Of a DNA stretch of 64,000 bases, positions 1 through 64,000 are shown piece after piece. The stretch spans positions 41,681-105,680 of the forward strand of contig JBBPEB010000022.1 of NCBI GenBank assembly GCA_039096225.1, given 5' to 3'. The notes beneath the pieces were generated by a model. It was not told the origin of the DNA. It searched no databases and was given only the letters and a program-made list of their open reading frames with translations. How positions within the stretch are numbered: the first letter of the stretch is position 1; every line of letters begins with the position of its first letter. Origin of the DNA: Blastocystis sp. Blastoise. Its lineage: Eukaryota; Protista; Bigyra: Opalinata. The position numbers were made by a program, and so were the translations under genes.

Positions 1-199
1 GAGTTAAAATGGATTTGTTCTCATTGTGACTGTTGTTGAGAAGAGGAAGTCTAAAAAAACTATAAACAGTTAGATATATGTATATAATGTCAAAATTTAA
101 AAGGTATAATCTAAAAGAGATAAAAATAAGTTTAAAAAAAGAGAAAATATATATATATATATAATATGTAAAAAATATTAAAGAAAAAGAAAAATAAGA

Positions 200-266
200 C
201 TTCATGTCAGGAATTGAACCTGAAAACAATCTATAATGATTGTTTCTCTCCTTCTGGAGCATAAAG
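200..266 (-). ncRNA. Atypical tRNA-like cloverleaf, copy 1
   Basis: Minus strand reads CTTTATG-CTC(CAGAAGGA)GAG-AAACAATC(ATTATA)GATTGTTT-TCAGG(TTCAATT)CCTGA-CATGAAG. It has a 7-bp acceptor-like stem, a GG-containing D-like loop and a canonical T-arm/B-box, with no connector nucleotides. Confidence 0.75.
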
Positions 267-810
267 GGAGTTTATAAATAATAATAATAATCAAATATAT
301 ATATTTATATATATATAATAAGAAGGAAATGAAGTGGAAGGATGAGGAAGAAGGAAGTAGGAAGGATTAGGAAGAAGAAGTAAGAATAAGGAAGGATGAG
401 GAAGAAGGATGAGAAAGAAGGAAGTAAGAAGAAGTAAGAATAAGGAAGGATGAGGAAGAAGGAAGAATCCAGAATGAAGAAGAAGTAAGTAAGAAGAATC
501 AAAGATGAGGAAGAAGGAAGAAGGAAGTAGGAAGTAGGAAGCATGAATGAAGAATGAAATAGGAAGAAGGAAGCATGAATGGAGAAGGAAATAGGAAGAA
601 GGAAGAAGGAATGAAGAAGGAAATAGGAAGAAGGAAGAAGGAAGAAGAAGGAAGGAAGAAGAAGTAAGTAGGAAAGATGAGGAAGAAGGAAGAAGTAAGA
701 AGGAAGAAGAACGAAGATAGAAAGAAGAAAAAAAAACTAAGAAGAATATTAAACCTATATACAATAAATAAACATAATAAATAAATAAATAAATAAATAA
801 ATAATAAACA

Positions 811-860
<50 letters not shown>

Positions 861-1420
861 TAAATAAATAAACATATAAAAAAAATGAATAAATAAATAA
901 TAAATAAATAAATAAATAATAAAAAAAAAGTAAACAATAAATAATAAAAATAATAAATAAAATATAAATATATACCTTTAAAATAACCTTGAACGACAGA
1001 TTAAAGAAGGAAAATATTTAGCAACGAAGACCACAACACATCCATTAAAGTTTCTTTCCTATAGAATAAAAATTATTAATAATATATAGAATAAATTATA
1101 TGTAAAGACTAAATAAATAATATTGATAATAAAAATAATAAATAATAAAAACGAATTAACAAAAAGAAAAACAGATCTTAAGAAATAAATAATATATTTA
1201 TATACCTGATCATAAATAAACCATTTTACACAGCCAAGACCACTTCAAGAACACTTCAACACCACAACCAAGGAAAATACAAAAGAATCCTATAGAAAAG
1301 TGTATTATTTTAAATAAATAAATATATACATACAAATATATATAAAAATAATAACTAAACAATATCAAATAAATAAATAAAACATACTCAGTCAATCAAT
1401 ATAATTAAATATTTAAAAAA
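267..1420 (-). ncRNA. Putative spliced lncRNA (or decayed gene) with U/C-rich terminal exon leading into tRNA-like copy 1
   Basis: First donor GTATGT near 1387, GT-AG bounded exons at 1289-1206 and 1058-976, and a terminal exon from 754 made of TTC/TTCC-rich sequence. No uninterrupted spliced ORF. Confidence 0.45.
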
Positions 1421-1648
1421 AGAGTAAAGAACTATGTTTTTTGGGTACCCAAAATGATTTTAAATAAGAATGACCCAATTATTACTTTAGTAACAAAATC
1501 AATAAAAAATTAAGGTTTTTTTTTATTTCTATTATGTTTAAAGAAGCATATTTTGAAAATAGACCCTATTATATTTATTAATACAAATGAAATAGGATTC
1601 TTAAATACATATTCAAATACTTAATTGTATATTATATTATTAAATAAG

Positions 1649-2811
1649 ATGTCTGAAAACAACAAAATGTCATCCAGGAGGAGGCCTGGAAATAAAAAAT
1701 AATTTATATTTCAAAGAAAATCAGGTTCTTCTACTCAATAAAATCCAGTTGTGTATGCTCTTGGTCTTGGTGGTACTTGCTATGATGGTCTTTAAGGTTC
1801 TTCTATGCTATTTGAATTATGCAGTGGTGGTGGTGTTGCCTGTTATGCTAACTGTGAAGGTTCTTCTGTTATTGTAAGTGATTCCAATAGTGATATCGGT
1901 GTTGATGTAGGTTCTTCTTGCTTTATAGATGGTATGTTACCAATCATTTATTTTTTTTTTATATTTTATTATTATTTTTTTATTATTTCTATATATATAT
2001 AGGTTCTTCAGTTGTTGTACATGTTAACAGTGATGTTGATAATAGATGTCTGTGTGGTGTTGAAGGTATGTTGTCATTCATTTATTTCTTTTTTTACTTT
2101 TATATATATAGATTTGTTTTATTGATGTAAATGTTGCTATGGATGTTGTTGGTGATCAGGTAGACTGCTCATATGATATTAAAGGTATATATATATTGTC
2201 ATTCATTTATTATTATTTTTTTTTTATTTATTATTTGTCTATTACTGTTTCTTTATAGGTTATTCTACTGTTGTGGTTGTAGTTGCTGAACGTATTAATG
2301 ATGAAGGTATGTCTACTTTTTAAATTTAATTTAGTTTATTATTATTTTTATCTTATATAGGTCGTTCTTTTCTTATGGAGTCTTGGATTAATAGTAATAA
2401 TGATACAGGTATATTCTTATTTCTTCCTTTCTTTTTTTTTTGATTTATTAATTATCTTTTCATTATATATAGGTTCTTCAAGTCAGTTAAGATATCATGG
2501 TGATTCCTCTGTTCCTTCTTTAGAAGGTATATATATATATTTATTGTTTATATATATTTTATCATTTATTATATTATATATAGGTGTCTTTTCTAATAGG
2601 GGATCTTATCACCCTAATGTTAGCTTTCATTTTAATAATAAAAATGTATCTAAAGGTATATATATATATATATAACAAATATTTATAATATTTCTTTTAA
2701 TATATATATGTTAGATATATTTATTATACTATCTCTTATTATATATATATATCTTTTATTTATATAGGTTCTCTTAGTTTTATTGTTATGTTTAGATTTT
2801 TTTTTTTTTAG
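1649..2811 (+). pseudogene. Modular micro-exon gene or pseudogene built of G-S-S-initiated units
   Basis: Phase-1 exons at 2003-2065, 2259-2306, 2361-2408, 2473-2526 and 2584-2655 (all multiples of 3), plus an out-of-frame 73-nt exon at 2112-2184. The ATG at 1649 is followed by in-frame TAAs at 1700, 1739 and 1793, and the frame is open from the ATG at 1805. Confidence 0.5.
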
Positions 2812-4274
2812 TTCTTTTTCTTTTTCTTTTGTTTATTATTATTATTATTTTTCACATTTAATAGCTTTCTATTATCTGCTTTCTTTATATTATTTATTTA
2901 TTTATGCTGTTGTTATCGTTTTAGCTATTCTATATTTAAATGTTTTCTTTTGCTATTTTTGTTTTGTTCTTTTTTTTTTTTTTTATTTAAATTGTGTCGA
3001 CTATTAAGATAATTCTTGAAATACTTAGTATGTTAAATAGTGTCAAGTTTTTAAATATTTGAATTAAATTTTAAAACATTTATTGTCACTTTTAACACTG
3101 TATAGTATTACTGATTTAAAACTGTCAATAATTGAGATATTTAAGTTTTGAGTTTCTCTGTTTACTAGCATTTATATTTACATAATTTTGTGAACGTATT
3201 AACTCATAAAAGTAACTTTAAGGTTGTAAAATAAAAAATATTATCTTAAAATAGGAGATTCGAAATTCTAATAGAAGTTTAATATATAATAAGCTAAATT
3301 CTACAACATATTAAAAAATAAGAGAATTTCATTTTTGAAAAGTGAATTAACAATGTGTTTGAGTTGTCTAGAAATTTTAAAGAGTTAGTATATTCTTTTA
3401 AAATTGTGTTTTCATTAGACTATGAAAATTTTGACTTTTAAAAACAAGTTTAAAGGGATTAATATTTTTAAATGTAGAAATGAATTATCCAAAGGATGAG
3501 ATTCAATATAAAATATTTTATTTATCAAACTATGAATTATATTCTAAATTATATCAAAAGAAAGGACAAAAATACACTTGACAAAGTGTATGACCAAATG
3601 TAAAATGTTTATAAAGAGTGTCAAAATGGTGACTCTTATGTTGATAGAGTTATGATGAGTATAGTGTTATAATATTAGCTTTTAAAATTAATTATAAGTG
3701 TGTCAACCTTTCAAAATGTGTTAAAAATGATCTTGAAGTCAGAGATTCAAGACATTAAACTTGAATTAATAAATAAAATAATGAGATCTATACTATGTGG
3801 AAGTTATGTCTAAAACTATTTTGATACACTTGATATCGAAATGGTAAAGTCTCTCTAAAAGTAATATTGTTGACACTTTTGTGTTTAGAAATGCTATTTA
3901 GATTGAATTTATTAATATTAATTCAAAAACTTTGTGTTTAAGTCGTTAAAGTCAAAATGAATGTTGACTTTGTTGTGTTAGATTTGTTTTATTTTTATGA
4001 AATGATTAAAATAAGTTTATGCTATTTTATTATAATCTATTTAAAATGATTTTACAACATAAAAATATTTTTCAATACTTAACATTATGACCCATTTCTA
4101 AATTTATTACCTTTAGAAACTCCATAATAATTAAAACAGTAATTTAACTATTTATAAATACAAAATATATTTTTAAAATAATAAATAACAAATATAATGA
4201 TTCAAAAAGGATTTCTTATTTTCTTCAAGTATTGTTTTTAGTTTTTCAGATACTATTCAAATAATCTATTTAGT

Positions 4275-4342
4275 TCTTATATCAGGAATTGAACCTGATT
4301 ACAATCAATAAATGATTGCTACTCTCCATATAGAGTATAAGA
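4275..4342 (-). ncRNA. Atypical tRNA-like cloverleaf, copy 2 (7-nt loop centred on TTA)
   Basis: Minus strand reads TCTTATA-CTC(TATATGGA)GAG-TAGCAATC(ATTTATT)GATTGTAA-TCAGG(TTCAATT)CCTGA-TATAAGA. Confidence 0.75.
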
Positions 4343-4511
4343 AGTGTTATTAAAATAATATATATAATATATAATATATAATATATAATAAGTAACATAT
4401 TATAGATAATATTTAATAAATAATATATATTATATAATATATAATATATAATATATAATAGATAAAAAGGAAAGAAAGTAAATAAAAACCAAACAGTTAT
4501 TATTCATTGCA

Positions 4512-4558
4512 GCCGCGGTCCGGTGCCGTTAGGCCCCGGACCTGCGGCGTGACCCTAG
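4512..4558 (+). mobile_element. Helitron-like 3' terminus (GC-rich hairpin followed by CTAG|T)
   Basis: The hairpin GCCGC-GGTCCGG-tGCC(gtta)GGCc-CCGGACC-t-GCGGC (4512-4548) ends 10 nt before the last base of CTAG (4555-4558), which is followed by T. It is an isolated GC island in AT-rich DNA. The 5' end is not established. Confidence 0.6.
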
Positions 4559-4619
4559 TATATTAATATAAGCTTAGTCAATAACAAAATAATAAACAAA
4601 ACAAGATTTTTTTTCTCAG

Positions 4620-5007
4620 TCATTTTTTTGGAAAAACCGGGTTTTTTCCAAAAAACCGGGTTTTCCCCATGAGTGTAAAATAACATTGATATAGTCATCA
4701 TCTTTGTCATAAAACCCATTACAATTGTTTTGAGCTACCCACGACACATAATCAGTAACATAATTGGACGGAACTCGTATAAAAGATGCTTTCGTTAAAG
4801 GGTTTATTACTCTGGTGTCTTTTGATCGTTTATAAAAGGTTTATTGACTAAATAAAACGTTCTGACAGTAATCATATTGTGAATCTGTTTGATAAACTTA
4901 TTAAAATTCATACTTTGAACTCTGTCAACTATTGCATTATAAATCTCGTCATAAGACTCCATAACACTCGTCAACAACGTCAAATATAGAATAATTAATA
5001 TAAACAA
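4620..5007 (-). pseudogene. Short orphan coding fragment split across two frames
   Basis: ORF 4807-5007 (MESYDEIYNAIVDRVQ...) overlaps a second open frame, TFYKRSKDTRVINPLTKASFIRVPSNYVTDYVSWVAQNNCNGFYDKDDDYINVILHSWGKPRFFGKNPVFPKK*. Joining them needs a frameshift or an atypical intron. Confidence 0.35.
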
Positions 5008-5286
5008 AGAATTGTGTATTTTTTTCCCCTTAATTATTTTCTCTATAATTTACAACAATAAAAACACTGCCATTTTGTCAAGTTTATCGCGGTAATAATA
5101 GTACTCAAAAATAGACTGTCCTGAGTCAAGTTTTACAATTTAGAGCGTCCTGAGTCAATTATCTCTTCTGTTCTTACATATTCCCATGAATATGGCAAAT
5201 TGTAGTAATTCCTTCTTTTATTCTAATTGAAGAACTACAACTCGTAGCTAGTATATTTTGTGTTAGTTTTAAGAGTTTTGTGAGGA

Positions 5287-7206
<1,920 letters not shown>

Positions 7207-7616: not shown

Positions 7617-7700
7617 TGCCAGCTGTGGGGTTTGAACCCACGCATGCGTTCGCATAAGGGATCTTAAGTCCCCCTCCTTGGACCACTCGGACAAACTGGC
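7617..7700 (-). tRNA. tRNA-Leu (anticodon TAA)
   Basis: GCCAGTTTGTCCGAGTGGTCCAAGGAGGGGGA-CTTAAGA-TCCCTTATGCGAACGCATGCGTGGGTTCAAACCCCACAGCTGGCA folds as a canonical cloverleaf with a long variable arm. Confidence 0.96.
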
Positions 7701-13300: not shown

Positions 13301-15086
13301 TGGAGTAGATAAAGTTAATGGATGAGGTAAGAGTGTAGATTTATTATTAATATTATTATGAGGAGTATTGATTTTAGGAGAAGGAAGAGCAGGAGACATA
13401 GCTATAGGTATATAGGGTATTTTATAATCATATATAAAAGAATCATCAATTTGATAATTATCTAAAATTTCTTTTTTAATTTTCCATACTTTTGCTTTAG
13501 AAAGTTGTGTTTTTTCTTTTCTATCAACTATTTCTCGGAATTTTCGTTCAATCTATATTATTAACGAGGTTCATAGATAGAATAAATATAATAATAAAAG
13601 AATAATAGTAAAAATATTAAAAATAAAAGACAAACTAAAATTAATAACAAATAAATTACATAAATAATAAAAACTAAAACCTTAGAAAAAAAAAGAAACA
13701 TAAATAAAACTAAGCTATTAATAATAAAAATATATGTATATATATACTTGTATTTTCTTTAAAACAGGATATTTATCAAATACTGTTTCTACAACATTAG
13801 GAATAGAAATAGAATGATTATGACTAATATAAATAATATATTTTATCATTTCATCATTAATTTCTATTCTTTGTTTAGATGGAGAAGTAATGTCACTTCT
13901 ATTTATATGGTTATCATTAATAGTATTAATAGAATCAAGACCATGTTTCTGAATAACATCTTTCTTTTGTTTAATATCATTATAATTTAACATATGTAAA
14001 CAACAAAAATATAAATCAGATTCTTTTTTAATTGTTTTAATAGTATTTACAGTAATAGGAAGTATAGATTTATTATTATTATTATTTATATTTTCATTAT
14101 TATTATTATTATTATTATTTTCTATAGTCATACAATTAGATAGATCAATAGACATAGAAGAAGAAGAAGACAGAGTATTTATAGTATCTTCTTGATATAT
14201 ATTTGTTAAAGGACCAATACAAATAGGTTTTTTAGTACGTAATGTAGCATCTTCACCATTTCTTCTTCCTGATAATTGATTTAATATATATGTACTTTTC
14301 TCTTCTGCAGACATTTGAAGACCTTCTGGTATTTCAACATCATCTTCTACCATAAATCCATCATTATAATCAAATTTATTAGGTTCTTGTTCATTTTCTT
14401 GATCATTCTCATCATCATCATCTTCTTCATTAATATCATCATTAATAATATCACTATCTACATGACTATCTTCATCTTCATCTTCTGACCATTCTATACC
14501 ACTATCAAAACTATAATCTAATTCATTCTCTTGCTTAAAAGGAGTTCTAGGAGTTATTATTAATGAATGTTTATGCCTTCTACCAAAGAAGGCAGGACGA
14601 TTATCCTCATAAAATTGTGTTAATTGATATCTATAATATTGGCGAAGATGATAATATATTTCATTTGAAGTATACTGTTTTATAGATTTATGTAAAGATA
14701 TATATGGCTTTATAGAAGAAACAGAAGGAGAAGGAGAACAAGGAGATATTGAAGACGTATTTAAAATTTCGATATCATTTGAATTCTCATTTTGATAGCT
14801 AGTATTATTATTATCACTATTATTATTATTATCATTAGATGATGGAAATAGAAGGGATTTATGAGTATTTGAATTCGATTTTAATCCATTATATATAGTA
14901 TTATATTCTTGTTTAAATTGTTTATATAATAATTGATTCTCTTTTTGGATATTTAATTTCATTTTACGAAATAATTGTATATCATCCATTATTAAATTAG
15001 GTATAGAATCATTATTATTTAAAGAATGCTTATATTCTACTTTCTTTCTCTCCTCTTCTTCTAAATAATAATAATAATAAAGAGTA

Positions 15087-15121
<35 letters not shown>

Positions 15122-15302
15122 ATATATATATACGTTGTAACTGTGTGAGTAATTCAGGATTATTTTCTTGTTTCGTAATAATATCTTTTTTCTCTTCTTG
15201 TTTAATTTTAGGAGCAGCACTAAAGAAATTAAATATACTATTTATTTGCTTTGTTTCTTTCTCTTTCTCCTTTTCTTTCTTATCTTCTATCTTCTCTTTT
15301 CT

Positions 15303-25405: not shown

Positions 25406-28771
<3,366 letters not shown>

Positions 28772-45026: not shown

Positions 45027-45141
45027 TAGAATCGCGACTATTTTTCAATCTAAAAGGGAATCACAAACAATATTTATGTTTCTCTTTATTAAGTTATTTT
45101 TTCTATTTTTATCTTAATTAATTTGATTTACATTAATATTG

Positions 45142-46407
45142 ATGCTCTCCATATTGGGATACTGCCGGAAAGATCTATCTAAATCATTAATAAGATATTT
45201 CTCTGTGAATTCAGTTCCAGTTATATATGATAGTATCTCAAATAGTATGAGACAATTGGATATGAACAAGAATGATCTTACATGGTATTCATGTGGCCCT
45301 ACTGTTTATGATGATTCACATATTGGACATGCACGTAATTATGTCAGTATTGATATAGCTCAAAGGATATTTAAATATTGGTATGGAAAGACATTATTTA
45401 CATCGATGGGTATCACTGACATTGATGATAAAATAATCAAACGATCAAAAGAAAAAAACATTCCTTGGAAACAATTGACTGAGCAATACGAAAATTCATT
45501 TTTTGAAGATATGAATCAATTAAATGTTTGTAAACCAAATGCCATATTGAAGGTGTCTGACCATATTCAAGATATTATTGAGTTTATTAAGGTATTTCAT
45601 TTTTATTATTATATGTTCGTTGTAAATATATATATAAATATTTATATTTATAGATATTAGTTGATAAAAATATGGCATATATACGTCCTTCTGGTGTTTA
45701 TTTTGATACAAATAATAATTTAATTCAATATGGGAAAATGAGACCAAGTCATTTTGATAGTATAGATACAGAAACAGGAAATGAAATAGTATTTCAGAGA
45801 ATAGATAAGAATAATGATAAAAAGAATCAATTTGATTTTGCATTATGGAAAAACACAAATGAAGAAGTAGATTATTATATTATATTTATATTATATTTAT
45901 ATTATTATTATATTTATATTATTATTATATAATATTATATTATTCTTTTTATTACTATTAATATGTGTGTATAATAATTATTTTTTATATTCATAAAAAG
46001 GGTTTTATGTGGGAATCCCCGTGGGGGAAAGGCCGTCCTGGTTGGCATATAGAATGTAGTGCAATGACAAATTATTTATATGGTGATAATCTTGATGTAT
46101 ATTTATATATATATTTATTTTTATCTCTATTGATAGTTTTATTTTTTTATTTATAATGCTTATTGATTATATTTATTGATTATATTGATTATATTGATTA
46201 TATTTGTAATGTTTATTTTATTTATAATGTTTATTATATTTTTATACCATTATATATATATATATATATATATAGATACACGCAGGAGGTATTGATTTAA
46301 AGTTCCCTCACCATTGTAATGAAATCGCTCTAACAGAAGCCTATTGTACGGATAACGTACGAACTAAATGTGATTGGCCACATTATATGATTCATACTGG
46401 ACATATG

Positions 46408-54829: not shown

Positions 54830-55077
54830 ATATAGTAGTCTTCATAATAAATAAATAATATAATATTGGTTAAAACTTCTTTAAAAAAAATTGTCTTTTT
54901 TTTTTTAAATTTTAATTTACTATTATCTTCGCTTAAAGCATTATATATGTATCTTAAACAATTTATTTTGTAACATTTAGTTCTTTTTTAACAAACAAAT
55001 CATTTTGGTTGTCTTTTTTTTTTATTTAATTATATATATAATACATATTCATACACTATGGACATTTTTTCAGGTTT

Positions 55078-55290
55078 CTGTCAAAAGGTCCAACGACTTT
55101 TTTGTTTTGGTTTCCCCAGTGGTGAGCAGTGAAAATTTTTAAATATGTAGCTGACAAAAGGTTATTTGATTTTTCTGTTTGGTTTCCCCAGTGGTGGAGC
55201 AGTGAAAAAATTTTAAAGGGTAGCTGACAAAAGGTCCAACGACTTTTTTGCTTTGGTTTCCCCAGTGGTGAGCAGTGAAATTTTTTGTCA
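55078..55290 (+). repeat. Three copies of a 73-bp tandem (subterminal) repeat
   Basis: Units CTG(T/A)CAAAAGGT...TTTGGTTTCCCCAGTGGTG(G)AGCAGTGAAA start at 55078, 55151 and 55224. Confidence 0.92.
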
Positions 55291-55842
55291 GAGTTTCAGT
55301 GATTTTATAAAATCGAAAAGCAGTGCAAAAGTATGACGCACCTTAAAACAATAATTGGCGAATAAAAATGGTTTTAAATATTCTCTATTTTTTCATTTAT
55401 TGGCTTTTTTTATTCTTTTTGTGGTGTAATAATAAACGATATAACAAAACAAACAAATTAAATATTATCAAATAATCATAAAAACAAATAATAGAAAACA
55501 ATAATAATAAATATATAAAAAAAAGATAATAAAACATATAATAAATAATATAATAAAATATATATAATATTTAATTTATAATATTTCAACCAGGACAGTT
55601 TCAGTCTTTAATTTGCATTTAAGCCTAACCAACCTATATAAAGAGATGATATTAGTTAAGTATTACTAATAATAATATATATATAACATTTTAAAATAAT
55701 AATAAAATAAAAAATATATACCTTTTCTTAAGTCATTACAAGAACAGGCAAGGAATCAAAGACAAAGAACCATCCTATAAAAGATATATGATAAATAGTA
55801 TAATGAATAAAAAGAATATAATTAAATATATATATATACTTT

Positions 55843-56292
55843 TTATAAACCATTCTCCAATTGGCCAACAACGACAGCAACAGAACTTATGGAAACCTAT
55901 ATAAAGATAGAGTGAGTTGTAGAATATAATAATATATGATATAATAAAATAATATAGAATAATAAAATATAAATATATACATTACTCCTATATAAATATA
56001 AAGTGGGGTTAGTTATATAATATGTAATAGATAATATAGATATATATGTACCTTTTATTCATGTTGATTCCCTTCATTCTAGACCTAAAGCACGCATAAC
56101 TATAAAAATAATTAGAAAAAGAAATATATATATATATACCTATAAGAGAACCATAACCACACACAAGAAGGAGCAGAACACTTAAGGAGACCAGGAATAG
56201 CCACAGCAAGAAGCAGAGACAGCTACTATAGAAAATGAATGAATAGAGTAGAAAAAATAAAATATAAAGAAACAGCAAACACCTACCATCAT
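55843..56292 (-). CDS. Putative micro-exon gene for a ~65-aa secreted-type peptide, with two more spliced exons downstream to ~55580
   Basis: Splicing by eye (including a 6-nt coding start and the 7-nt exon GAGTAAT) gives MMLSLLLAVAIPGLLKCSAPSCVWLWFSYSYACFRSRMKGINMNKRSNVSISSVAVVVGQLENGL*. Confidence 0.35.
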
Positions 56293-58150
56293 AATAGTAT
56301 CATATGATATGAAATAAAGTAATAATTTAATAATACATCATTATAATGATATAAGATATAATAAAATAAATATGTGATAAGTCATGTAGGATTTTGTTTT
56401 GTTATAAAAGGGTGTAATAGGAATTTAGAAGATATAGCTGAAATAATGAAAATAAACATGAATAATCTCATATCTACTAAATATAGAGAATCTTCATCAT
56501 AAATAAAATGAATGGTTAAGAATAAAAGAGAAAGAGAAATTTTATTTCTATGAGGAAAATGGATATTGTTATTGTTATTTTCAATTTATCCTAATTATTA
56601 TTAATACTATAAAAAATGTTTTATTTTAAAGAATTATATATTTATTTATCATTATAATGTTTTATAATTAGTTTAGACGACAGAAGAGTCATTTTTATAG
56701 TTAATTATCAAAATTATTCTTAGTATCACTTTGTAAGTATAACTTATTTTTTAAATAAATATAGGCTATAATACAGACTTATAGAGAAGACCCTGAGACT
56801 TCTAATCCCAAAATAAAAGTGATTTATATAATTCAGAATGATTGTCTGAATCTTCATTTAAAGTATTAATTTGAGTCACATACTTTCAATAAAATGATTA
56901 AATAAAGAGAAAGATGATAAAAAAGGTCTAGAGTCAAAATTGTTATGAAATATTATCTTTTTAATCTATTTGTGTAGATTTTCTATTATTTTATTATCAT
57001 AATATGACTGAAAGAGAGAAGAAAAAACATTTTAAAAGTCAATTAAGTCAACAATTGTAATCAAGTAAAAGTCTTTTAAAACCTCTTCATAAACTCAAAA
57101 CGTATAGAGTAAGTGTTTTCCAGTTAAAATAATGTTTATTCGTTACAATAATATCAAAAACAAATCAAATTATTATTTTATAATTACTCAAGAACAACTT
57201 TTTCTATCAACTAAGGACTCATAGCTATCAAATATGCATATGAATAAACAAAAATAATATTTTGTATATTTTTAATTGAAAAGTCAGAGTCGTGTTGATA
57301 GTTTATTATAAAACAAATGCAAAAATCACTTTTTTATCAAAAAAATGTTTAATCTCGATTTATCGTTATATTCATGATTTATTTATTGTCTACTTACCGT
57401 GTTTAATCATCTTCAGTGATTTTTAGTGAAACTAAAATTATTTCAAATATATATTTTATTTTCAATAATAACAGAAACGTCTTATATTGCATATTTAGTG
57501 TCTAAATGAAGTTTAAAAGTCATGAAAGTGATATCAATTAATCAAAAATTATAAAATATAAAGAATCTCCATTTTTATGACTTGTCTTAAATCATGTTAA
57601 AGAGTAAATGAATGAATAGTTTCATTAGATCATCTGTATGATTTTAGTATTATTTTCAAAATATTTTGTTTTTTAACAAGAATAAATTCTTAATTTATTG
57701 TTTATCAAGTCAAAAATGTATTTAAATGATTTTTTTCTTGTGTAAAAGGATACACTGATCATATGAAAAAAAAATTGCACAGAATCTTTTGATAATATAT
57801 TTTTGAAAAATGATAATTATTTTTTTGAACTAAACTAATATTTTACGTATAAACATTATAAAATCTCTTGAATAATCTTTTGAGAAGATTCTTTGTTTGA
57901 TAATACACTTAATTAAGTAATTGAATGTTATTGTTGGAATCTTTTTGTATTGAATAAATTGTTTTGAATGCTTTCTTTGAATCATCTATATACAACTAAT
58001 ACATTTAATGATTAAATAAATACACATATAAAGAAAAAAATAGTAATTAACATAATTGATCTTCACCTCTCTGAATATATATTTTTTGAAAAATCTTATA
58101 CAATATGAATTATTAAAACCTATATATACATAAAATAGTTATATAATTGA

Positions 58151-58218
58151 CCTTAAGACAGGAATTGAACCTGTTTTCTATCATAAATTGATTGATACTT
58201 ACCAATTTAAGCTTAAGG
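58151..58218 (-). ncRNA. Atypical tRNA-like cloverleaf, copy 3
   Basis: Minus strand reads CCTTAAG-CTT(AAATTGGT)AAG-TATCAATC(AATTTAT)GATAGAAA-ACAGG(TTCAATT)CCTGT-CTTAAGG. Confidence 0.75.
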
Positions 58219-58523
58219 ATAATATAGAAGAAAAGTAATATAAATGGGATAGTAAAATAATACGAATAATAAGTCAGTATGATGTGTAAGAATATATTTA
58301 TATATGTATAAGAGAAAAAGGATGCTAAATATAGGAGGGAAAAAATGAAAAGAGAATAAATAGAGAAAAAATATAAAGTTAATGAGATAGGGTCTTTAAT
58401 TAATGAAATTAATAAAAAAGAATTAAAATAATAATATAGATAAATGAAAAAATATAAATATAGAGATCTATAATAGTAAGGTATGCTGAAGAGAAGAGGA
58501 TTAGAGGAGAAATGGGAAAAGCA

Positions 58524-58912
58524 TGAGGAAGAAGAAGAAGAAGAAGAAGAAGATGATGATGATGATGATGATGATGAAGAAGAAGAAGAATAATGTAGAA
58601 GATGATGATGATGATGAAGAAGAAGAAAAAGAAGAATATGTAAAAGAAGAAGAAGATGAAGAAGAATATGTAGAAGAAGAAGAAGAATATGTAGAAGAAG
58701 AAGAAGAATATGTAGAAGAAGAAGAAGAAGAAGAAGAAGAAGAAGAAGAAGAAGATGAAGAAGAATATGAAGAAGATGATGAAGAAGAAGAAGATGAAGA
58801 AGAAGAAGAAGAAGAAGAATATGTAGGAGAATATGTAGAAGATGATGATGATGAAGAAGAAGAAGAAGAAGGAGAATATGTAGAAGATGATGATGAAGAA
58901 GAAGAAGAAGAA

Positions 58913-58945
<33 letters not shown>

Positions 58946-59120
58946 GAAGAAGAATATGTAGAAGATGATGATGAAGAAGAAGAAGGAAATAATTATAACC
59001 AGAAGAAGATGGAGAATAAATAGAATAATAAGAAGATGCTTGTGAAGAAGAGATAAGGAAGAAGAAGAAGAAGAAGAAGAAGAAGATGAAGAAGATGAGA
59101 AGAAGAAGATGAAGAAGATA
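58524..59120 (+). repeat. (GAA)n/(GAT)n compound microsatellite with recurrent GAATATGTA
   Basis: Directly visible trinucleotide array. Confidence 0.9.
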
Positions 59121-60219
59121 ATATTGAGATGTATATGAAAAAAATAAGAGATAACAGAATAATATATAGAAAATGTAGAATAAAAATAATAAGATGAATA
59201 AGAAGAAGATAATGAAATGCAGATGAAGATGAAGAAAACGAAAAAGGAGATAAGAAAGAAGAATAAGAAGAAGGAAATGAATAAATACAAGAAGAAGATG
59301 AAGAATAAATAGATTAATGATAAGAAAGAACAAGAAGATTAAGGTGAGAGAGCTAAGAGGAAGAAGGTGAAGAAGAGACTAGAAAGAAGGTAAAAAATAA
59401 AAAGAAAAGTAAGATAAAGAATAGGAAGAAGATGAACAAGAAGAGAAAGAAGAATGAACAAGAAACATATATTGAGATGCAGAAAAATAAAAATAAATAT
59501 AAAGAAATAGATCGATAGATAGATAGATAGATATATAGATAGACAGAAGGAGATAGAGATGGAATAGAGAGAAAGAGAAATACAAAGATAAAAATAGATA
59601 GATAGATAGATAGATGAATAGAAAGAAAGAAGAAAAGAGAGACATAAAGAAGAAATTAGATAGAAAGAGATAGAATTCTATATAGAATGAGAGATATACA
59701 AAAGAAATCAAATGAAATAGAGAATAAGATAAAAATAGATACAAGAATAAAGATAAAAAGAGAAATAGAGGAGTAGGGAAGGTGTATAAAAAAGAAAGAA
59801 TATAAAGATAGGTAGAGAGGAATTGAGAAGGATAGAGAAGGAGGAGGAAAACAGATAGAATTGGAAGACGAAGAAAAGAAGATGAGACGAAGAAGGGAGA
59901 AAAAAGGAGCAGGAAGTGAATATCAAGAAAGATAAATTTATATAGAAAAAAATTAGAAAGAAAAATACATACAAAGAAAACGATAGGGAATGATAGAGAG
60001 AATTATAATTTGAATGACATAGAGAGAAGGAGAGACAAAGCAAGATAAAGAAGTATAATAGAAAAAACAAAGAAGAAAAAAAAGAAGAATAAAAAAAGAA
60101 AAGATAGAACAATAGTATATGAGAGAAGAAAGAGACAGAAAGAAAACGGGAAATAGGGTAGAGACATAGAAGGTAATAAAATATATAGAAGGGGAGAGGG
60201 GATTGAGATAAATAAATAA

Positions 60220-60332
<113 letters not shown>

Positions 60333-62382
60333 GATAGAAGAATACCGAAAGATATAGAGAAGGAGATAAATATTAATAAAAAGGAAAATATGGATAGAGA
60401 GGAGATAGAATCAAACAGAGAAGGAGAAGTAGATAAAAGTCGTTGAGAGAAGAGAGAAGTAGATTAAAATAAAAACAAATAGCAAGAGTTAAAAGGAAGA
60501 AGGGAAGAATATAGAATGATTTGAAGAATGAGATGTATATAGAAGTGAATAGAAGGAAATAGAGAAGGAGAAGTAGATAGAAAAGATTAAAAATAGAAGG
60601 AGATAGAAAGATAAGAGAATGATATAGATACAATAGAATGAGATAGAGAAGATAAAGTAGATAGAAATGGATAGAAATAAGAAAAATAAATAGGATAAGA
60701 GAGAAAGAGAGATAAAAGGATATAAAAGGATATAGAAGGAGAGAAAGCGGATTGAGATGTAGTAAGATGGAAGGATGTAGATGGAAATAGAGAAGTAGAT
60801 AGAAGATGATGGAGAATAAAGAGGAGATAGAAGAGGAGATAGAAGGAGAAAAAGAAGAAGAGGAAGTAAATTAAGTTAGAAGGAGATATAATAAGATAGA
60901 GAAGTAGATATACGTAGATATAAGGAAATATACGAAGATATAAGTAGATAAGAGAAAATAGAAGGAAATAGAGAATGAGATTGAGACACATAAATGAGGT
61001 AGAATGAGATAGATAAGGATAGAGAAATATGAAGAGAAATATAGGAATACAGAGAGATAGAATGATGTTGAAAGAGAAAGAAAAGGAAAGACTGAAGATT
61101 GAGACAGAAGGAGTAGCTGAGATAAAAGGAAGATAGAGAAGGAAATTGAAAGATGAAGGAAGAAGGAGAGAAGATGAAAGAAGAAGAATATAGAAGAAGA
61201 TAGAGAATGAGATAATAGGGATAGAAAGAGAAAAATAGGAAAAAAGATGGTTAGAAGAAAATAGAAAAGGAGAAAGAAGGAGAGATAGAAGGAGAAATAG
61301 AAGGATATAAAAGAGATTAAGAAAGAAGTTAGAGACAAGAAGATATAGATATATAGAAAGAAATAAAAGGATTAAATAGAAGATTAATAGGAAATAAATA
61401 GGAGACAAATAGAAGATTAAGATAGAAGAAAAGAGACAAAATAGAAGTAGATATAACAATATAGAGAATGAAAGGATAGAAATAAAAATAGAAAATAGAT
61501 AACTAGAACATAAGAATATATAATAATAGAGAGAAGGAGAGAGAGAAGAAAAAGTAGATATAAAGTGGAAAAGGAGACATAGAAGGAAATATAAAAGGAA
61601 ACAAGAAGGTAGAAAGAGACATATAAGATAAAATAGACAGGGACAGAGAGAAATAAATGGAAAAAGAATAAGGATAAAGATGGATACGAGAATAGAGAGG
61701 GAGAGAAGGAAGATTGAGATAGAATTATACAGAAAGAGGAGAGAAGGAAGATAAAGAAGGAAAATAGGGCAGTAAAAAAAAGGGAATCAGAAGGAGGAGA
61801 GAAGAAGTATGAGAAGAATAGAAAGAAGGAAGAGGAGGAAGGCAAATAATAGAAGAGAACTATATATATAATAAATAGTGATATAAATATAAATAAGAAG
61901 ATGAAGATCTGAAAAAAGCAAAGAATTATATGGAGAAGAAGAAGAAGAAGAAGAGGAAGAGGAAGAAAAGGAGGGTATACACTAATACATGTCGAGGAAA
62001 AAGAAGTATAGAATAAGGAGAAGAGGATAACAGGATAAAAGAAAAAGACATAACGAAATACAATGTAAATAGAATAGTGATTAAGAAAGAGTAATGAAAG
62101 AGTGATATAAAAGGGAAGCGAAGATAAGAGAGAGGTATAATTAAAAAAAAGAAAAATAAAGGAATTTAGATAGAAGAAAAAATAAAAGAAAAATGAAGAT
62201 CTGAGGAAGATAATGAATCAAAGGGAGAGACAAGGATATAGGCTGGAGACAAGGCATAGGAAGAAGTAATAAAGAAAGAAGATGAAGAAATAAGGAGATA
62301 AAAGTGTAGAAGGAAGAAAATGAAGAAGAGAGAAGAAGGAATCATTTTGTGTAAGAAGAAGAAATAAAGAAGAACTAGATAA

Positions 62383-62413
<31 letters not shown>

Positions 62414-64000
62414 ACATACCTAATAGAAAAAAATGAATTTGGTGATGTTGAGTCATAGGGAAAGATAACCAACAGAAACAGTAGAAAACAACCTAAATAA
62501 ATAAATAATAATAAATAAAAATATAAAAATAATGAAAATAAATAATAAAATGAATTAGAATTCTAATTCAAGAAAAAAAAAAAGAAAGTTAATAATAGAT
62601 AGAATGAATATACGATAAGTATTCTATCATATAATACTTACAGAAATATAAAAAATAAAAAGATAAGAGATAATTATAAAAATAAATAAATACATATATA
62701 CTTTGAAAATAGTTTGACATCATAGACGTTGTTGACATGGACTGAAGAGGACTCTTATAACCATGGACGAGCAGGAACCTATACATGCTAGAGAATGGGA
62801 GAATGTTAATATGGGTAAAGAATAAAAAATAGTAATATACATACAAGAGAATAGTCTGAAGTTAAAATGAACTTCTATTTTTAAAAATAAAAGCAAATAA
62901 AAATAGAATAAAAATAAAAAAAATAAGTAACAAATGAAAATATTTTCTAAGTCAATAGGCTCAATAGCGTATGGGTGTCTTCAGGTCTTAAAAGAAAAAT
63001 CATTTTTGCGGGAATATCAAGAAACTCAAAAAAAGTATATTTTCCCTCCTTTTTTCGCTGTCACTTTTTTTTAATATTTTTGACTTTTTAGTATTAAAAT
63101 CGATTCTTACAGGCATGTATAGACACTTTATACCACTTTTGAAACTAAAAATCAAATATTTAAAAATGAGTGAAAATCTTAACTAGCAAGAAAAACAATT
63201 TTGTAAGCTGAGTATGTTGTGTATAAATATGTCTAACAACAGAGATGATAAAAACGCACAACTCCTCTTGGTTTAGGACATAATTATGAATTCTCTTAAA
63301 AAAGCTATTTTAAACCTTAAAACGATACCCTGAACTATAAATCAAGTCCTGAATGATATTCTAAAGTCATATTTTTAAAAACAGGTTTATTGACGATAAT
63401 CAATAAACAAAAACAAGAGCTTCTGTTTTACTTTTCTTTTTTGAATTTTTAATTGTTTTGACTTTCTAGGGTAGTTGGCTAAAAGAAATGTTGTCGTCTT
63501 TAGGCTAAAAAATGATGAATAAAAAAGTCAAGTCATTTTATTGTTTTTTCCTTGGGAAATCAAAAAGAAGAAATTTTTAGGTGTGTGTTGATTTAGGCTG
63601 TATAATGGTTTTTATTGTAAAAGGACTTGACGAGAATGATTGAAATGATAATACATCACTCAGAGAACACACAAATTTTAAAAATTTCTCACTCATGTAA
63701 TCCATTCCTGAATTATAGACTTCAGAGAAAAAATTAAAGTCTTTTTGGTTTTAAACAGTCATTTTAAATCATAAAACACTGTAAAATAGTCAATATTTAG
63801 AATGTCTATGATTATATAAATAAACAATATATTTTGTAGAGTTATTTTTAAGTTTTTCTCGTCAAAAAGAGAGAAACTTGACAAGTTGGCGGACACTCTT
63901 TTCTCGAGTTTAGGCCAACGTATTTTTGATTAAAAAATCCCAGTCATTTTGTTGTTTCTCTTACGGGAAATAGGGTCAAAAAAACACAAAATGTCCATAG

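Follow-up and report, generated by a model that had tools for sequence, protein, structure and literature searches.

The three cloverleaves in the window (the whole 64,000-nucleotide stretch of DNA analysed here) belong to a large family of linker-less, tRNA-like structures in which the RNA fold is under selection, decay and decoding both being ruled out. The cloverleaves are fixed-position cargo of three superfamilies of DNA transposon, namely Helitron, CACTA and MULE elements, a context that the initial annotation does not mention. The family is real and selected, and both the lineage and the vehicle are unexpected for a fold of the mascRNA type. The copies in the window are the following:

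200-266, minus strand: cloverleaf type A, with at least 40 copies at 96-100% identity.
Arms of the type A copy, minus strand: acceptor 266-260/206-200, D 259-246, anticodon-like 245-224, T 223-207.
4275-4342, minus strand: cloverleaf type B, 216 nt inside the 3' end of a Helitron and oriented inward.
58151-58218, minus strand: cloverleaf type C, within a CACTA-type element and 3.1 kb from its left TIR.

In each copy four helices are joined without unpaired linkers, giving a 7-bp acceptor, a 14-nt D arm, an 8-position anticodon-like stem and a 5-bp T stem closed by a 7-nt loop. The minus-strand coordinates, stems and loops reported in the initial annotation were all recovered, with some refinement of the details. 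The anticodon-like stem does span 8 positions, but A-A mismatches interrupt it, once in 4275-4342 and twice in 58151-58218. Likewise, the D arm stands, but its description as a 3-bp stem with an 8-nt loop is better replaced by 4 bp and a 6-nt loop ending in GG (columns 11 and 18 covary as U-A/A-U). The T loop TTCAATT, previously called invariant, is constant among the window copies but reads TTCAACT in one subtype outside the window. Folding z-scores relative to dinucleotide shuffles were -4.4 for 200-266, -3.7 for 4275-4342 and -3.2 for 58151-58218; the minimum-energy fold of the last copy, taken alone, is not the cloverleaf, which is nevertheless the consensus of the alignment. CCA is not encoded after the type A copy at 200-266, where the next base is T. 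As had been anticipated for tRNA callers, neither ARAGORN nor Rfam called any of the three copies, and the only tRNA or ncRNA that they returned for the window (GC content ~16-29%) was an ordinary tRNA-Leu gene at 7617-7700. When 150-320 was searched against Rfam with permissive settings, chance matches alone were obtained, with no family at the gathering score or at E ≤ 10. The tRNA-Leu(TAA) at 7617-7700 also lacks an encoded CCA.

The earlier count of three copies turned out to be a small part of the total. A structural pattern describing the linker-less cloverleaf matched at least 273 places across the genome (33.34 Mb in 34 contigs), while the reversed-pattern control matched none; a looser pattern gave 320 places, including some real tRNAs. 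The covariance-model search of the genome that had been proposed at the outset was carried out with a model built from the copies, and returned at least 150 matches, with scores of 83-95 bits among the matches listed. The readable loci comprise 22 distinct variants, 66-68 nt in length, which fall into five subtypes (A-E) that are 65-82% alike. A tree of the 68-nt cores recovers these five subtypes but not the branching order among them. Additional divergent linker-less subtypes were matched by pattern at C1:323215, C5:261937, C5:302649, C2:20197, C2:789701 and C10:100150, one of them bearing two adjacent G-A mismatches in its anticodon-like stem; some of the divergent subtypes may be single-copy, and a host source gene could be among them. 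Scanning metagenome and viral collections with the pattern yielded 7 loci, none above 26 bits as compared with 76-95 bits for true copies, and no relatives of the family were found in these collections. Five of the 7 loci were rejected as tRNA gene clusters, scoring at most 26 bits with the covariance model. The viral tRNA clusters also contain a 49-nt tRNA-like element, apparently without an anticodon arm, that is not called by ARAGORN (L053:5346-5394; also in L054, L055 and L057).

Selection on the fold is evident from the pattern of substitutions. Across the 22 variants, 96.8% of stem cells pair on a 23-pair structure, with two-sided changes at 11 of the 23 pairs; the covariation score was reached by none of 500 shuffles, and slid controls paired at 38-45%. 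As related copies can inflate a covariation test, the comparison was also made with one representative per subtype. Subtypes A, B, C and D differ by 10-15 stem substitutions and yet retain all 23 pairs, whereas random placement of the same substitutions is expected to leave 13-16 pairs intact, and none of 20,000 simulations matched A-D. Comparisons involving subtype E gave P values of 0.0007-0.015. The non-Watson-Crick pairs comprise seven classes of G-U and one of A-C, an excess that places the selection on the strand reading the T loop. RNAalifold recovered the cloverleaf unaided, together with a fourth covarying pair in the D stem. The elbow residues, i.e. G16 and G17 (the D-loop GG) and T50-A54 (the T-loop UUC-R-A), are invariant in the 22 variants, and the whole T arm is nearly so. 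Conversely, variation is greatest in the anticodon-like loop, which occurs in 13 versions of 5-7 nt. For type B, identity is 0.93 in the core against 0.70-0.81 in the flanks. The first position is occupied by C or U, and 6 of the 22 variants lack an intact 1-72 pair.

All variants lack tRNA positions 8-9, position 26 and the variable loop, and in place of the canonical 5-bp anticodon stem with a 7-nt loop and a conserved anticodon they have a stem of 8 bp. The random stem decay that would have pointed to pseudogenes was looked for in the further copies, which instead showed 96.8% pairing with covariation. In combination, the covariation, the strand-specific wobbles, the conserved elbow and the free anticodon loop bear out the original proposal of a structurally selected, non-decoding mimic rather than a set of decaying pseudogenes. 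The sequence data strongly support a perfect four-way junction in which the acceptor/T stack and D/T elbow are retained and a functional anticodon is missing; its three-dimensional shape would, by analogy, be that of mascRNA. The family probably descended from a tRNA via loss of all linker residues.

The elements that carry the copies in the window are:

1-4558, plus strand: non-autonomous Helitron of ~6.3 kb, starting ~1.73 kb before the window and carrying types A and B antisense.
4512-4558, plus strand: 3' end of this Helitron, a GC-rich hairpin followed by CTAG and then the target T.
55054-64000, strand not assigned: CACTA-type element with a TIR that begins CACTATGG; the right TIR is cut by the contig end.

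The Helitron hosts of types A and B begin with TC, end in a hairpin plus CTAG, and occupy AT targets. Type A lies ~2.0 kb from the 5' end and type B 0.2-0.7 kb from the 3' end, in fixed positions. Helitrons of 2.7-3.2 kb, too small to hold RepHel, keep type B only. The genome contains ~50 RepHel frames, of which at least 7 have a type A copy antisense 5.7-6.3 kb upstream. Type C is located 3.1 kb inside a CACTA-ended element, the family being represented by ~30 TIR pairs 8.5-8.8 kb apart, with the class assigned on these TIRs. For the MULE hosts, seven PF10551 matches lie ~12.2 kb upstream of same-strand cloverleaves; the one MULE-linked cloverleaf that was read is of type D, with a type E copy 4.1 kb farther on (L045). 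TIRs were not seen for the MULE, and this class rests on the transposase domain in the same repeat.

Several other features of these elements were observed. Two Helitrons abut by their 5' ends in head-to-head orientation, the insertion of one in the first bases of the other being apparent (L039:7933-7990, ~1.73 kb before the window; L035:8772-8830), and short Helitrons occur in head-to-tail arrays (L040, L041). In one autonomous Helitron, a 463-aa DDE_1 transposase frame (PF03184) is inserted in the stretch separating type A from RepHel (L047:2441-3829). The window Helitron carries micro-exon gene-like cargo with numerous short Ser/Val/Asp/Gly-rich exons at 1750-2810 (plus strand, opposite the cloverleaf strand). 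Regions of ~1 kb downstream of A and B (window 3400-4270, and the 1.1 kb before position 1) are 70-76% alike mutually and to the short Helitrons, so that an old duplication may have given rise to the A and B units. In the MULE-type element a long purine/pyrimidine-skewed tract occupies the strand opposite D and E (L045:1-900; L043:7905-9951).

The closest known counterparts are mascRNA and menRNA, which lack all eight linker residues while keeping the acceptor/T stack and the elbow between GG and the T loop (PMC11693755), and which RNase P and RNase Z cut out of Pol II transcripts (PMC11693755; PMC12941219). The comparison with these RNAs drawn in the initial annotation is therefore apt, since mascRNA is likewise devoid of all eight linker residues (PMC11693755). 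Both groups share the four linker-less helices, a 7-bp acceptor, a canonical T arm, a small D arm with a loop ending in GG and a long anticodon-like stem with no codon role, and here too some types close long, non-coding-looking units. However, mascRNA and menRNA measure 57-58 nt against 66-68 nt here, where the D and anticodon-like arms are longer, and the present copies have no A-rich tract or ENE just upstream (the longest A run in 25 nt is 1-4). Moreover, mascRNA and menRNA derive from vertebrate MALAT1 and NEAT1, in contrast to ~270 copies on DNA transposons in a stramenopile. No curated Rfam family matched the cloverleaf family at the gathering score or at E ≤ 10. The family is accordingly mascRNA-like by architecture and not a member, given the missing Rfam match, the longer arms and the lack of a triple-helix tract, and the likeness is most likely convergent. 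By the same analogy, the parts conserved here correspond to what RNase P and RNase Z read in mascRNA and menRNA.

As mascRNA and menRNA, with the same linker-less topology, are RNase P/Z signals, the reading that we favour, with confidence evenly divided, is that the cloverleaf acts in cis as a cassette cleaved by RNase P/Z, through which transcripts derived from the element are ended or destroyed. A longer transcript would traverse the cloverleaf, RNase P would cut 5' of position 1 and RNase Z after the discriminator; the two cuts would release the mimic and leave unprotected ends on either side, so that the host transcript would be ended or destroyed in cis. Such an effect is probable, since the cut has no A-rich triple-helix tract ahead of it and would leave the upstream end exposed rather than protected. 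The linker-less design would attract the processing enzymes yet keep the mimic clear of aminoacylation and translation. The genome contains an RNase Z domain; the search for RNase P RNA was blank, its control also being silent, and for PRORP one weak exon match was obtained (E 0.009). The retention of the cloverleaf in short non-autonomous Helitrons without room for RepHel suggests a cis benefit to the element.

The transcripts that would be cut differ between the types, as seen from the sequences flanking the copies:

267-755, minus strand: pyrimidine-rich, nearly G-free tract leading into type A, with stops in all three frames.
1207-1290, minus strand: exon-like segment between AG and GT motifs, presumably spliced, with stops in all frames.
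58219-62400, minus strand: 4.2-kb pyrimidine-rich tract leading into type C, mostly ~80-90% C+T and 0-4% G.
62421-62779, minus strand: two short exon-like segments (62421-62492 and 62703-62779) upstream of the type C tract, presumably spliced, judging from their motifs.
190-194, minus strand: T5 run, possibly terminating Pol III, 6 nt beyond type A.

In three different hosts, same-strand tracts of 0.5-0.8, 4.2 and 2.0 kb, mostly 80-90% pyrimidine and nearly free of G, lead into types A, C and E, respectively. Short exon-like segments occur farther upstream of these tracts, and those before A have stops in all frames when the segments are taken one at a time rather than as a joined model. The units upstream of A, C and E are alike in composition, with no clear homology among them beyond low-complexity matches, and no pyrimidine-rich tract was found upstream of B and D. 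AG motifs are present 30-100 nt downstream of several types, and the cloverleaves may possibly be intronic; strand-wise counts of splice motifs were set aside, being dominated by base composition. At A, C and E, cleavage would terminate the preceding pyrimidine-rich units, and transcripts reading into the 3' end of a Helitron would be cut at type B. Antisense or double-stranded RNA would thereby plausibly be limited in a cell with Argonaute-type genes, for which Piwi-domain matches were found at two loci; an anti-silencing purpose of the cleavage is purely conjectural. Set against the cleavage cassette are the C or U at position 1, the broken 1-72 pairs, and the short stretch of element, just ~0.2-0.7 kb, upstream of type B. 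The fuller scenario, in which a mascRNA-type quasi-tRNA evolved independently in a protist and was acquired and exchanged, as a device that needs no protein of its own, by three transposon superfamilies that cut their own antisense or read-in RNA via host RNase P/Z and so escape silencing, is put forward tentatively, as a conjecture that is rather less likely than its opposite.

With regard to expression, 21% of the words sampled from window 1-5600 were present in a 2023 run guessed to be RNA, but possibly DNA, and 9% in a poly(A) gut metatranscriptome of a different study, the words being in neither case placeable and the runs consisting of assembled contigs, in which RNA ends do not show. 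The lone host exon in window 1-5600 covers ~6% of the stretch. As both shares exceed this figure, part of the Helitron may be transcribed.

As the main alternative, each cloverleaf could be a self-contained Pol III gene, in which a short precursor transcribed from internal A and B boxes is trimmed by RNase P/Z to a stable, non-decoding decoy RNA, and where bound TFIIIB/TFIIIC may block read-through or heterochromatin. All variants contain the B box GGTTCAAYTCC, and an A-box-like 12-mer is found at columns 6-17 with normal spacing, albeit without G10 in all types and without T8 in C and D. These box motifs are, however, also the elbow residues read by RNase P/Z. A T5 run lies within ~25 nt downstream in 19 of 19 distinct flanks of type A, 3 of 3 of D, 2 of 2 of E and 4 of 10 of B, with almost none upstream, while the background for T5 within 15 nt is 7%. 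Conversely, type C has no close T5, and in 5 of the 10 B flanks the first T4 is 66-90 nt away; in contrast, the tRNA-Leu of the window is followed at 5 nt by a T6 run. Conservation is higher in the 20 nt that adjoin the cloverleaf on its upstream side than in the farther flanks (0.97 vs 0.72 for type D), as would suit a Pol III gene, and type B would require no upstream unit. On the other hand, a trans-acting RNA would be expected to vanish from non-autonomous elements. The B box, the A-box-like 12-mer and the downstream T5 fit Pol III and the cleavage cassette equally well, and transcription by Pol III, which we regard as possible but doubtful, would give the same mature RNA as cleavage from a longer transcript, so that the two routes are not mutually exclusive.

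A quite improbable alternative is a boundary element acting at the DNA level through TFIIIC bound to the B box, with the RNA fold a relic. The invariant B box and the constant placement of copies, close to the ends of elements or separating cargo units, are as such a site would predict, but a DNA site calls neither for compensation between paired positions of the acceptor, D and anticodon-like stems nor for a G-U bias. Even less probable is a neutral tRNA-derived SINE or pseudogene amplified passively within transposons. Transposition of the hosts does explain the high copy number, near-identical copies share flanks, and tRNA-derived SINEs resemble the family in tRNA ancestry, B box and abundance. 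They differ from the present copies, which have no tail and no target-site duplication in the inspected flanks, fixed internal positions and a structure under purifying selection; at least 5 subtypes, only 65-82% alike, keep all stems, the precise loss of linkers is unlike decay, and the covariation has already largely refuted this reading. The weakest proposal, a four-way junction formed in single-stranded DNA during rolling-circle transposition of Helitrons, is scarcely credible despite the perfect 4H geometry, the residence of most copies in Helitrons and the placement of B near the 3' end, as cloverleaves are also present in cut-and-paste CACTA and MULE elements, their loop sequences are tRNA-specific and they are not at termini.

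Further comparisons may be drawn with other tRNA-like and transposon-borne RNAs. The t-elements of plant mitochondria are degenerate, few and organellar, whereas the cloverleaves described here are nuclear, transposon-borne and form a strictly linker-less family. These t-elements are tRNA-like folds contributing to 5' and 3' transcript end formation (Forner 2007, PMC1920247). The family would in part resemble the TMERs of gammaherpesviruses in being a non-aminoacylated tRNA-like RNA with internal boxes on a selfish element. The TMERs are Pol III tRNA-like RNAs that combine a normal cloverleaf with miRNA hairpins, neither of which is seen here. In work attributed to Tycowski in 2016, ENE/dENE triple helices reportedly occur in plant and fungal transposon RNAs, where they are said to stabilise poly(A) tails. 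Both cases involve a transposon-borne structured RNA otherwise known from the 3' ends of lncRNA or viral RNA, but here it is the tRNA-like half of the MALAT1 module that is present, without the triple-helix half.

A 2025 paper names MALAT1 and NEAT1 as the only lncRNAs that mature through the tRNA-processing machinery (PMC12941219), and the linker-less fold has so far been described from vertebrates. No description of transposon-borne mimics of this kind was found in the literature searched, most subscription journals lying outside that search. If the proposed role is correct, this second, independent family would show the fold to be a widely applicable means of attracting RNase P/Z and keeping out of translation, and would represent a new kind of transposon cargo, i.e. 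a structured RNA signal common to rolling-circle and cut-and-paste elements. In that event, its many natural covarying variants would provide a ready-made mutational scan of the fold.

The remainder of the window contains host genes. The gene from 5287 onward is likely the proteasome ATPase Rpt3, with Pfam blank on the first exon. Domains were found for CAF1A at 13718-15220, SRP72 at 28171-28713 and a Cys-tRNA synthetase at 45139-45660.
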